Positions 46,648-59,888 of a stretch of DNA of 64,000 bases are shown one piece after another (position 1 is the stretch's first letter; every line of letters begins with the position of its first letter). The translations under genes were made by a program, and so were the position numbers. The stretch comes from Trichosphaerium sp. ATCC 40318 (Eukaryota > Protista > Tubulinea), in assembly GCA_038496445.1 (NCBI GenBank), contig JALMLS010000281.1, positions 115,610 through 179,609 of the forward strand. Direction: 5' to 3'. The notes under the pieces were generated by a model that saw only the letters and a list, made by a program, of their open reading frames with translations, was not told where the DNA came from and did not search any database.

Positions 46648-47274
46648 ATGAGAGTCCTTTCTTTACTATTAAACATCCCAATTGAAGTACATTATCATAT
46701 CATCGATTTGGACTTTGAAGTGTATCAAAAGTGGCCATTATTATCAAAATACAGTGCTACAACAACACGATTCAATTACGAGCTTCAAAAACATGGCACG
46801 TGGCTGAAAAGATGTGACACTTTTGGTGACACAAACAATATCAGTCAAGTTTTCGTTAATGGTAACAAAGAAGGAGAGCTAAGGTGTTGGTATAATAACA
46901 AAAGCCAGTTGTATGAACAAGGTAACTACTCAAACAATATACTGCAAGGTGAATACAAGTGGTGGCACAGTAATGGTCAATTAAAGCGTCAAACTAGTTA
47001 TACTGATGGTAAGCGAGAAGGAGAGTTTAAGCAATGGCATTTTAATGGTCAAATATATCTCCAATGTCATTTTGTTAAAGGTAAGCTTGAAGGAGTGTAT
47101 AAAGAATGGTATGATAATGGTCAATCATACCTGCGTTTCCATTATGTTAATGGTTTGAAAGAAGGAGAATATACTAAGTGGGATCAAAATGGTCAAATTG
47201 TGAAAGTTGTATCTCTCGCAGCGTTAGCAAATATAACAAACCCATATTTTGTTTTAGTTGAATTCATGTTCTAG
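46648..47274 (+). CDS. F-box-like + MORN2 (YwqK-type) repeat protein, intronless, copy 1
   Basis: LLNIPIEVHYHII N-terminus; five repeats of about 24 aa of the form G.Y..W..NGQL.....Y..GK.EG. Confidence 0.85.
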   Translation: MRVLSLLLNIPIEVHYHIIDLDFEVYQKWPLLSKYSATTTRFNYELQKHGTWLKRCDTFGDTNNISQVFVNGNKEGELRCWYNNKSQLYEQGNYSNNILQGEYKWWHSNGQLKRQTSYTDGKREGEFKQWHFNGQIYLQCHFVKGKLEGVYKEWYDNGQSYLRFHYVNGLKEGEYTKWDQNGQIVKVVSLAALANITNPYFVLVEFMF

Positions 47275-50348: not shown

Positions 50349-50945
50349 ATGGCAAAGAAAGCCATGTTGTTATTACATATCCCAGTTGAACTACATTATC
50401 ATATCATCGATTTGGACTTTGAAGTGTATCAAAAGTGGCCATTATTATCAAAATACAGTGCTACAACAACAAGATTCAATTACGAGCTTCAAAAACATGG
50501 CACGTGGCAGAAAAGATGTGGCAGTTTCGGTGTCTCTCCACAAAACATGAACACTATCAGTCAAGTTTTCGTTAATGGTAACAAAGAAGGAGAGCTAAGG
50601 TGTTGGCATAATAACAAAAGCCAGTTGTATGAACAAGGTAACTACTCAAACAATATACTGCAAGGTGAATACAAGTGGTGGCACAGTAATGGTCAATTAA
50701 AGCGGCAAACTAGCTATACTGATGGTAAGCGAGAAGGAGTGTTTGAGCAGTGGCATTTTAATGGTCAACTATATCTCCAATGTCATTTTGTTAAAGGTAT
50801 GCTTGAAGGAGTGTATCAACAATGGCATAATAATGGCCAATTAAAAATGCGTTTCCATTGTGTTAATGGTTTGAAAGAAGGAGAATATATTCAGTGGGAT
50901 CAGAACGGTCAAATTGTGAAAGTTGCGTATATCTCACGGCATTAG
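50349..50945 (+). CDS. F-box-like + MORN2 repeat protein, intronless, copy 2
   Basis: Close paralogue of 46648-47274 with long identical stretches; about 160 bp of 3' flank is also shared. Confidence 0.85.
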   Translation: MAKKAMLLLHIPVELHYHIIDLDFEVYQKWPLLSKYSATTTRFNYELQKHGTWQKRCGSFGVSPQNMNTISQVFVNGNKEGELRCWHNNKSQLYEQGNYSNNILQGEYKWWHSNGQLKRQTSYTDGKREGVFEQWHFNGQLYLQCHFVKGMLEGVYQQWHNNGQLKMRFHCVNGLKEGEYIQWDQNGQIVKVAYISRH

Positions 50946-51490: not shown

Positions 51491-52136
<646 letters not shown>

Positions 52137-55143: not shown

Positions 55144-57570
55144 ATGGAAAAGCACCACAGTACGTTGTTATAGCGCCCACTTTGTTTAATACCGTGCAGA
55201 CTCCAGTTGGGAGGATATTTACACTAACTTATTCGAAACGCTTCCAACACGTTGTTTTAATACGATCCTATCTCACTTACCTCCAAAAAGCCTCATTTAC
55301 TTCTCTTCGTTGTCAACACTATGCAAACAACGTGTAGACGATAATTTCGAATGGCAAGAGTACTTGAAGAACCAAGTAGAGGATCTACAGCGCCTTTCAA
55401 GAGAAAAGCGAGTTCCTCTCCCTTTTGTACCAAAAACTATCCACAGCCAAAACGAACTCGCTCTATTTGCTCACAGCAAGAGCTATATAAACCATTGGAG
55501 TGAAGCAAGTAAATTCCTGGAACATACGTTAGCCTGCCAAGATATATTTTCAAGCTGTTCAACTACTCCAGAGCGTTGGTTAAACTTGGGGCTTCAACAG
55601 CTTGTAACTCAAGTGAAAGCTAAAAGTACACTTCCTGGATTCTTTGCATATGCACGTGACATTACTGTAACTGTCTTATCTATGTAAGTCTGTCAATATA
55701 CACAACACTGTTGGTGCCAATTAAACGAAATAGGATACTATTCCGGGCTTTGGAACATCAACAACCAACTGACCAACAGAGTTTAGTTATTCAAGATTCA
55801 TCTGTTGTAGCTGCATACAAACAACTTGTACAAGAATCTCCAGCATCATTTCCTGAAGCAGGTGTTACCTTAGAACCCACCAACTACTTCCAGTCTGAAG
55901 TAACTAGGGTGAGTGTCCTCAAAGAAAAGAGCATCAATATCAAAGAATATAATTCTCTTAGAAAATCAATTGTGCGTTGTTGACAACAAGCCCTTGCCCG
56001 AGCTGACAAATTCCTTTAGAAACAGAAACATAGTATCAAAGAATTTCATTTGCTGGCGCTTTTATCCTATGTTAGTAATCTGGGCTACAAAATCTCTTTG
56101 AATGCGTTAAAGCTTTGCAACACCCTGACTTGTAATGCTATTCTCAATATCTTTAAACTGGCTCACAGTGTTGCTGAAAGTAACGGATCAAGGCACTTAA
56201 GTAAAGGTAATCTCGAATTTGTTTGGGTAGTAATGCAAGGTCACAAACGGGGCAATCCCAGAAATAGCATTGTTAAATTCAAACCAAACATTGAGCTACA
56301 GAAGCAACGACTAATGTATGTTCTAGATTGTAACCTACAGTGCCTACTAATGATGTTTTAGGATAGGCGACGTTGATGTAAAAGAGAAATGTTTGACAGG
56401 AGGAGATGTTGCATTTTATGATGTCACTTTTGTTGTCTTTTACAATACAGATCCTGTACTTACACTTAGAGGGTCAAAGTGCTTACTGAGTAAAAACTGC
56501 GAGTACGTTGCTCTAAAAAAAGTAAAGCTGACTTTGGCCAGATACTTAAAAAATCAGTTCACAAAGTTTAAGAATGATGATAGTACTTATCAGCTTGTAC
56601 TACTTGAAGGCGAAACACAAGATTCTCTTCTGTTAGTTCTTGAGTATCTATCTACATCCTCCCTTGAAGACATACTTAAAATCACTTCAGTGGAGACAAT
56701 CATAGGTGTACTCATTAGATTAGGCCATGTACGAACATTGCCAAGTAAAACCTTTCCTCTGACTTTTACAGTTTGTTAAAGAAGATGCACAAGAACAAGT
56801 CTTTCTTGGTTGTAAATTTGATATTTCTGATTCAGTGGCGTTGTGTAATTACCTGCTACCCTCGGTTATAGCTAGAAAATCTGTTTCTGATCGTATTGTA
56901 AAGCTGATAGGCTCTAAGAAAAAATTAATATCAGTGACTGACGGACCTATGAAACTTCCTAGAAGTGTATTTATGCTCATTGCAAAAAAAGTTCATCTAC
57001 AATCCTGTGACTTGTGGCTCATTGCTCGTGCGTATTTTGTTCTAACAGAAATCACTTATGAAAGCTACTAATAGATGCCTCATCGCTGCCTGATTTGGCA
57101 CGTGAATATGCACCGAAGCTTCCACACTTCTTTGCACGATACTTGCTGACATGTTACAAACCTGAAGACTTTTACTGGCACGAAAGATGGGGTAATATTG
57201 TATCAATAGACACCTTACGTTCTGAATCTCACTTGCACGCTATGTCATGTGCTTGTGGTATTGAAACTGTTGAACAGTGCTATGAGATTGGGGGTGGTGG
57301 TGAAATTTACGTTGAAGGGTTTATACTGTGCGTCTTTCAGTTCATTACAGTTGTGATACTAACGTGCCAAACAGAAGATACAGCACAATCCGAAATTTTC
57401 TGACTTTCACAAAAGAGCTAGCATCTAGGAAGGTGCTTTTTGATGTCCTGTACAGGTTTCAGCATGACAGAAAATATGTAAGTATGTTATCAGGTAATAA
57501 ATCTTATGGTGGTTTCAGTAGAACTCTATACATAAAGCCGTACGTAACATTGTGTCTATTTTAAGCTAAG
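55144..57570 (+). CDS. F-box + tandem H4-like/H3-like histone folds + BTB/POZ protein; multi-exon
   Basis: MEKHH|N...FETLPTRCFNTILSHLPPKSLIYFSSLSTLCKQRVDDNFEW (F-box); two helix-loop-helix-loop-helix segments that align to H4 and H3; YDVTFVV...LRGSKCLLSKNCE|YLKNQF...LVLEYLST (BTB). Junctions through the BTB domain checked as frame-consistent. Confidence 0.7.
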
Positions 57571-58063: not shown

Positions 58064-59888
58064 ATGAACTCAAACAGCGCATTCTTTGATGAGATACCTA
58101 TTGAGATTATTGTACACGTGTTACAATTCCCTTCTTATTATTGTATACGTTCAGTAGCCCATACATGCACAAATTTAGCTATTATAACTACACAATACTT
58201 TGGATACAGGAGAAAAATCTTCATTAGAAAGAAAAAACAGCTGAAGAAATTATACAAGAAAGCGCCACATGTTTTTAAGAATTCTTCGAATATCCCATGC
58301 GCAGACACTGTTTATGGTGAAAGTACACAAAATTTTTTGACCTATATTTTTCCATCTCTTCAAGCTAAATAGCACAATATCATACCATTTTATCACCAAT
58401 ATACAATACTATCTATACACAAACCAAAAGTTTATACAATTGATTGGGTGGTGCGGCAGAGCATTGTCAAAAAAGTCAATTTTTACTTTTTGACACAAAA
58501 TTACTTTTATAGTTCAAAGACGGTATACTCATATTTTTCAAAATCTATTATTGACGTAAGTGCTAAAAGGTTTTAGTGGTACATGTAAAAACTAAACAAA
58601 GAGTTTTATTAATATACGTAGCAGCATTTTACAATTATTTTACAGGCCTAAAAGTGATTTTGACACTCAAATTCCTCCCTTACTCCTACAGTTATTTCAA
58701 TAATTAAACAACCGCATATAGTACTAACACATCTTAAGAACCTACTATTGGATTTACACTTTTACACAGTTGAGCAGGCCGGAAAAAATGAACACAAAAG
58801 TGGCTTTTTTACCATTTTGAAACAGCCTCGTGAACAGATGATTAATAATTTTTTTAGTTCTTTAATGTTTAAAGACGGGTGCAAAGGGCTTTTAAATCAC
58901 ATATAGTGTGAAGGGAAAGAGTTATGTTTTAGATGGTCCACAGTGTGCATGCAAAGTTGACACATCAAAAATTTTAACTTTGCAAAAAAACGCTCTAGCT
59001 TGCAACCCACCATTTTGATTACCCCTTAATATTCACACATATAGTAGTATAGATGTTATATTTGTAGCTAACTTTATGGCCTGTTTAAGTAAATATGCAT
59101 GTAAATATGGTGTCCCTTCACCAGAAAAAGTGTGTCCCTTCACGGGATATGATAATTCTTGGGTTTATGCTGAAACAAAAGCACTTTAAGTATCTAAATG
59201 GTGTTCGTTCTTTGAAGATAGAGAACGTAAACAATAAATATTTTGGTAGCGGTTTGGACAAAAAAGTTAATTTTGAAAAGTTAGAAGGTATTGATACTAT
59301 TGACTTTACTGATTGTTATTCGGTTACTGATGAACACCTTAAACAACTCGCTGGAATACATAAAATCATTTTAAATGGCGCAGCTGTTACAGATGAAGGT
59401 ATTCAAGCTCTGGCTGGTATTCATACTATCTATTTGAATAGATTGGACATTACAAACAAAGGTATTAAGGCGTTGGTTGGCGTTCATGAAATAGATATAA
59501 GTCATTGTACATGTATAACGGATGAAGGAATTAAATCATTGGCTAGTGTCCATACTATAAGTTAAGCTATTGTAAACATGTTACAGATGAGGGAATTAAA
59601 GCATTGTGTGACGTTCACACCATCTGTCTCGATGGATCAGTAGTTACAAATACAGGCATTAAAGCATTGGCTAGTGTTCATTGGGTTGGACTCAATTTTT
59701 GCTTAAGGGTCTCAGATGATGGTATAAAGGCGTTGACAGGAGTTCACACTATTTCTTTAAGCCGTTGTCACTTTGTTACAGATGAAGCTATTAAAGCGTT
59801 AGGTGGTGTTCATACTATTTTGGTAAAACGCTGTGGAGGGATTACAATTGATTATATAAAATCTTTAAACAATGTGGTTGAATTGTAG
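58064..59888 (+). pseudogene. Intronless F-box + LRR gene disrupted by an 853-bp insertion and a 1-nt frameshift
   Basis: FDEIPIEIIVHVLQF F-box; repeats of about 22 aa (GIHTI.L..C..ITDEGIKAL). At about 59563 AGTTAAGC reads as AGT TTA AGC missing one T. Confidence 0.85.
58294..59146. mobile_element. Non-autonomous TIR DNA transposon (MITE), CCC...GGG ends, ATAT target-site duplication (Sola1- or piggyBac/Pokey-like)
   Basis: ATAT at 58290-58293 and 59147-59150. Left end CCCATGCGCAGACACTGTTTATGGTGAAAGTACAC versus reverse complement of the right end CCCGTGAAGGGACACACTTTTTCTGGTGAAGGGACAC. Excision restores the host frame. Confidence 0.85.

Follow-up and report, generated by a model that had tools for sequence, protein, structure and literature searches.

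Proteins of the ABTB2 type, which are reported from animals only, combine a double histone fold with ankyrin repeats and a BTB domain. According to a 2026 review of double histone folds (PMC13088155), their two folds are ∼25–30% identical to H2B and H2A, and ABTB2 and ABTB3 (BTBD11; formerly Cca3), in which the folds are located N-terminal to the BTB domain, are proteins of a non-chromatin, protein-interaction type. The F-box substrate receptors of SCF (Skp1-Cul1-F-box) ubiquitin ligases, on the other hand, have the F-box at the N terminus, and the C-terminal part behind it varies. Examples are the F-box/MORN expansions of the amoeba Trichosphaerium, in which F-box and MORN are the commonest domains among genes ascribed to giant-virus transfer (PMC10521059). 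Finally, Marseilleviridae have H4-H3 and H2B-H2A doublets, which are nucleosome components with neither F-box nor BTB. Here, we analysed a gene of Trichosphaerium sp. ATCC 40318 located at 55144–57564 of a 64,000-nucleotide (nt) stretch of DNA (contig JALMLS010000281.1, positions 115,610 to 179,609), hereafter the window. All coordinates are positions in the window, and all features are on the forward strand. We lean towards the reading that this gene encodes a lineage-specific SCF substrate receptor composed of an F-box, one histone-type fold and a BTB-like domain.

Compared by architecture, ABTB2/ABTB3 is the closest described system. In both cases a histone-type fold precedes a BTB or BTB-like domain. 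ABTB2 has two folds, ankyrin repeats and no F-box, whereas the amoeba protein has one supported fold, an F-box and no ankyrin repeats. A sequence-only reading of the same DNA, which proposed an F-box, an H4-like and an H3-like histone fold and a BTB domain in a single protein, had also named ABTB2/BTBD11-type folds. The likeness holds for the architecture but not for the type of fold, the ABTB2 folds being H2B/H2A-like and not H4/H3-like (PMC13088155). With F-box receptors the amoeba protein shares the N-terminal F-box, the variable C-terminal part and adaptor-type neighbours (see below). It would differ in carrying a histone-type fold and a BTB-like domain behind the F-box, and full-text literature searches found no description of such a protein or of any F-box protein with a histone fold.

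A probable histone-type fold behind the F-box

The F-box is located at 55238–55354 (aa 19–57; aa, amino acids). It matches Pfam PF00646 over profile positions 3–41 of 43 with a score of 26.4 bits (E = 6.1e-6), above the gathering cut-off of 20.5, which bears out the earlier claim. As judged from its sequence, the F-box is confirmed as real and intact.

Some 190 residues past the F-box, exon 4 encodes a stretch (56032–56247, aa 251–322) that is probably a histone-type fold with two helix-strand-helix units. The proposed elements are alpha1 SIKEFHLLALLSYVSNL, L1 GYKISLN, an alpha2 of 28 aa, L2 SRHLSKG and alpha3 NLEFVWVVMQG. This assignment is made because language-model neighbours, model topology together with Foldseek matches, and ungapped threading coincide on the same ∼70 residues. 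The language-model neighbours of exon 4 belong to histone-fold clusters only (PF00808, PF00125, TAF and CENP-T). The best of them scores 0.91 and has 173 of 256 features in common with exon 4; according to the calibration of the tool, true family members typically share 170 or more. The ten best named matches all come from the same clan. The AlphaFold2 model of exon 4, computed from the single sequence, has helices at residues 6–20, 27–33 plus 38–54, and 62–76, and strands at 24–25 and 59–60. In other words, three helices, 15, 28 and 15 residues long and the middle one kinked at residues 34–37, are connected by two loops with a 2-residue strand in each. When this model was used as a Foldseek query against BFVD, viral histone-fold proteins (histones, histone-like proteins and one TAF12-like protein), a class that is rare in the viral structure library, filled 13 of the 20 best rows. 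Histones were also found among the PDB rows. For threading, we used a histone profile built from 113 archaeal histones. When its L1-to-alpha3 block (profile positions 18–66) was moved without gaps along the whole protein, the best placement was at aa 268 with 3.2 bits, the next place scoring −11.5. This corresponds to P = 0.007 against shuffled proteins, and a null of natural sequences expects ∼0.024 such matches per protein. The distance from the K-I-S of the L1 motif to the glycine ahead of L2 is exactly the spacing of archaeal histones.

Several results weigh against this assignment. At E ≤ 10, no exon matches a Pfam family of the histone-fold clan, which includes PF00125, PF00808, PF02969 and PF15511, and exon 4 matches no PDB chain, histones included. 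The gapped hidden Markov model (HMM) of archaeal histones gives P = 0.04–0.10 on exon 4, which is not significant, and hhalign of exon 4 against the histone alignment gives a probability of 1%. The threading block 18–66 was picked after inspecting the sequence, i.e. post hoc, and full-length histone threading gives P = 0.135 with its peak elsewhere, at aa 450. The exon 4 model has a kinked alpha2 and a low predicted local distance difference test score (pLDDT) of 59, and none of its Foldseek rows is significant (all E > 0.2). Moreover, with its chain folded back, the model matches the shape of AAA+ lid domains, with VIA Z scores of 8–9.9 and template modelling (TM) scores of 0.57–0.63 in the atlas. 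By the tool's own account, VIA Z scores of 8–10 are common among helical bundles.

The AAA+ lid (C-terminal helical) domain is the best shape match to the monomer model of exon 4, and both consist of two helix-strand-helix units. Lid and histone fold are considered homologous, the histone fold being derived from the AAA+ C-domain by a 3D domain swap in which these two units are exchanged (Alva et al. 2007; PMC1847821). The likeness to the lid is no real contradiction because a lone histone-fold chain closed on itself should resemble a lid. Going by the model, the exon 4 module could be a closed lid-like bundle instead of an open histone fold. A true AAA+ lid was considered and rejected. Unlike in AAA+ proteins, no ATPase core is found ahead of the fold, and the language-model neighbours are histone-fold proteins, not AAA+ proteins.

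The upstream stretch and the proposed doublet

An open-form histone fold cannot exist alone and needs a partner. A probable second fold could thus call for a first one within the same chain, and the sequence-only reading had indeed placed an H4-like fold at 55556–55833 (aa 125–200), ahead of an H3-like fold at aa 236–322. Under this alternative, aa 125–322 form an intramolecular double histone fold in which aa 125–200 make a handshake with aa 251–322, as in ABTB2, Sos and viral doublets, and the protein would be a ubiquitin-ligase adaptor with a histone pseudodimer built into it. The upstream stretch is of roughly suitable length and spacing and contains, as seen by eye, an L2-alpha3-like motif, SLVIQDSSVVAAY. 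In addition, ABTB2 provides a precedent for a double histone fold together with BTB (PMC13088155).

The upstream stretch was blank in all tests. For comparison with real H4 and H3, we took the proteins encoded at locus L002 of a giant-virus metagenome contig and performed Smith-Waterman alignments with 1000 shuffles per segment. Alignment of aa 125–200 with H4 gave z = 0.8 and alignment of aa 236–322 with H3 gave z = −0.3. Other segments of the protein, used as controls, scored equally well or better, and the alignments that had been read as in register are therefore no better than chance. The archaeal-histone HMM gave P = 0.56 (shuffles) and 0.64 (natural windows) on aa 125–200, and hhalign of the same residues against the histone alignment gave a probability of 0.1%. 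Histone threading within aa 118–215 showed no signal in any block, and sub-block threadings were not significant. The two claimed folds show no similarity to each other that would indicate an internal repeat (P = 0.37). The intron at 55684–55733 splits the upstream stretch mid-way in its proposed central helix. These sequence tests are weak on aa 125–200, and a very divergent fold could escape them. Taken together, of the two histone folds claimed, the second is probable by language model, structural model and threading, and the first is not supported; we consider the double fold unlikely.

The link to the H4-H3 doublet of Marseilleviridae fares no better, because similarity to H4 and H3 is at chance for both halves and no doublet is demonstrated in the amoeba protein. 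Marseillevirus/Melbournevirus histones do appear as weak Foldseek rows for the exon 4 model (7lv8_A, E = 0.27; H4-H3 doublet, E = 2.1), none of which is significant (root mean square deviation ∼9–14 Å), and the amoeba protein has no sequence similarity to H3 or H4. A role as a histone mimic that recruits histone chaperones, as the sequence-only reading suggested, is not supported either. That a true intramolecular double histone fold lies between F-box and BTB, and that the gene stands for a family of such pseudodimer-bearing ubiquitin-ligase adaptors specific to amoebae, is in our view quite unlikely. If it were true, such proteins could target or mimic host or viral histone-fold proteins. 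Histone doublets are encoded by giant viruses of other amoebae. The Trichosphaerium lineage, for its part, has reportedly acquired an unusually large number of genes from giant viruses.

Two other places were noted in the course of these comparisons. A second histone fold after the BTB-like domain, at aa 450–517, was tried and rejected (P = 0.135), since it overlaps the BTB-like helices. Within the same region, the peptide DSVALCNYLLPSVIARKSVSDRIVKLIGS (56829–56915, aa 487–515) is similar to the L2-alpha3 motif of histones (..HAGRKTVKAEDIKLA..). Its score, the top one for the L2-alpha3 sub-block, is not significant (P = 0.078), and it overlaps the end of the BTB-like domain. As for the comparison sequences, contig IMGVR_UViG_GVMAG-S-1091232-186_000001, which is binned as a giant-virus genome, carries adjacent and nearly canonical eukaryote-type H4 and H3 genes (L002, 1900–2793 of that contig, reverse strand), and the record of that name has a further H4 motif at a second locus (L001).

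The BTB-like domain and the C-terminal part

The sequence-only reading also proposed a BTB domain after the histone folds. A word search seeded with poxvirus BTB returned two poxvirus proteins only, and the locus scan only the same contig, so metagenome loci were used to build a profile. The resulting BTB HMM was made from 72 open reading frames (ORFs) of metagenome contigs carrying the motif AH.xVLAAxSxYF. On exon 5, it scores 5.9 bits, with P = 0.0023 (3000 shuffles) and P = 0.0003 (4000 natural-protein windows). The alignment covers profile positions 43–84 of 131 only. Its core, aa 405–447 (56540–56668), corresponds to the BTB stretch '..YF..mf.. ..i.L.dv....l..lL.flYtg.le'. The same HMM gave nothing significant on aa 1–345, exon 2, exon 4 or exons 7–8.

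Other searches speak against a BTB domain. Neither Pfam BTB (PF00651), BTB_2, Skp1_POZ or similar families on exons 5 and 6, nor PDB chains against exon 5, gave a match at E ≤ 10, and the language-model neighbours of exon 5 are not BTB proteins. The AlphaFold2 single-sequence model of exon 5 is unusable (pLDDT 42), Foldseek and VIA returned nothing meaningful with it, and hhalign of single segments against the BTB alignment gave nothing usable. The claim of a BTB domain therefore stands in part: a weak profile signal is confined to exon 5, where it had been predicted beforehand, but Pfam and the language model do not see it. On the basis of this profile signal, we regard it as likely that ∼aa 360–480 (56405–56810) are a BTB-type domain. 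The remaining C-terminal ∼220 aa (56811–57561), possibly the substrate-binding part, have no credible match, with Pfam chance rows below threshold (E ∼0.1) and one PDB row at E = 0.11.

The results above also have to be weighed against an alternative in which neither the histone fold nor the BTB domain exists, the protein consists of fast-evolving orphan helical bundles behind an F-box, and the weak signals are due to chance or to the testing of chosen places. Neither domain reaches a curated threshold, the gapped histone HMM and the Foldseek rows are not significant, the VIA scores are in the range common for helical bundles, the exon 5 model is unusable and the threading block was post hoc. 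Searches for relatives weigh against the SCF receptor reading, as they give no support from conservation or covariation. A full-library phmmer search with exon 2 against 1.84 billion representatives found only three tandem-repeat artefacts, word searches of public protein collections with exons 4 and 5 gave no match, and no relatives of these two exons were found in viral contigs. Against the alternative that lacks both domains, three kinds of test mark the same 70 residues as histone-type, and the BTB signal is limited to the exon predicted beforehand and survives two nulls. We find it rather improbable that neither domain is real.

In the SCF substrate receptor that we favour, the N-terminal F-box would dock the protein on Skp1. 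The histone-type fold at aa 251–322 would pair with a different histone-fold protein or with a second copy of itself that the BTB-like domain holds near. The latter domain would most likely serve self-association and, less likely, offer a second cullin docking site; for a domain this divergent, the engagement of Cul3 suggested in the sequence-only reading is not supported. The C-terminal ∼220 residues would probably contribute to the binding of targets. Should the histone-type fold prove real, the protein would be an F-box adaptor with a histone fold as its working module, the combination that we have not found described. An amoeba would then have joined histone fold and BTB, a pairing reported until now from animal proteins of the ABTB2 type, by what looks like a separate domain shuffle, and the protein would lend itself to studies of the recognition of histone-fold proteins by ubiquitin ligases. 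At present, the gene is a further member of a family of adaptor genes that shuffles rapidly.

Gene model, searches for relatives and genomic setting

The gene consists of eight exons: E1 (55144–55159), E2 (55200–55683), E3 (55734–55971), E4 (56020–56315), E5 (56362–56728), E6 (56772–57027), E7 (57075–57327) and E8 (57375–57564). In this frame-consistent splice model, the joined frame is open through 699 codons, followed by a TAA stop. All seven introns are GT..AG introns of 40–50 nt, each of which removes in-frame stops, and several contain CTAAC/CTAAT-like branch sites. The peptides of the sequence-only reading are present at the places where it had put them, and its junctions VLSM|ILFRALEH and LRKSI|KQKHSIKEF are those of this model, which is the sole frame-consistent one. 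Its placing of the F-box and BTB parts in one gene is likewise upheld. The BTB-like part is not a separate gene because the E4-E5 intron, which is 46 nt long and has a TACTAAT branch-like site, is too short for a promoter, and because exon 5 is devoid of Met codons. The ATG of codon 345 arises only through E4-E5 splicing, and the frame then has no further Met until aa 518. As read from the sequence, the locus is one real, intact, lineage-specific F-box gene. That it is not expressed as modelled, being a decaying or mis-spliced family copy or giving rise to two transcripts, is very unlikely: no identical or related protein was found in the public collections searched, but the F-box is intact, 699 codons are open over eight exons with seven canonical short introns, and a separate BTB transcript would have no start codon before aa 518.

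No paralogue of the gene was found within the window, the model matching its own locus only (tblastn against the window). The three proteins found with exon 2 (P0001, P0002 and P0003) are long proteins of near-identical tandem repeats, whose scores are summed from many weak stretches and do not reflect homology. A phmmer search of the PDB with exons 2–7 found nothing relevant, exon 3 giving a single irrelevant match to a copper ATPase (E = 1.5). A viral 'relative' of exon 7 (L244) was rejected because it is a phage ORF that matches the 8-residue seed MSCACGIE by chance. The proteins of this organism appear to be absent from public collections.

The GC content of the window is 33–41%; the Trichosphaerium genome has a GC content of 37.69% and 8.7 introns per gene (PMC10521059). 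An Rfam scan of the window gave no match. As assessed with Pfam, the adaptor-type neighbours of the gene are two genes with MORN_2 and one that has LRR_6 and an F-box-like start, and an Arf exon is also present. The MORN_2 repeat occurs at a near-identical internal position in two similar ORFs, 46648–47271 and 50349–50942 (E = 3e-15 and 2e-14, respectively), and these ORFs are probably exons from MORN paralogues. An Arf-family GTPase is represented by its C-terminal two thirds in the exon at 51783–52133 (Pfam Arf, E = 5e-31). The next downstream gene, at 58064–59885, begins with a start that by eye is F-box-like (FDEIPIEIIVHVLQF...) and has no Pfam match there at E ≤ 0.01. This start is followed by leucine-rich repeats (LRR_6, E = 5.6e-8), and the gene probably encodes an F-box/LRR adaptor.

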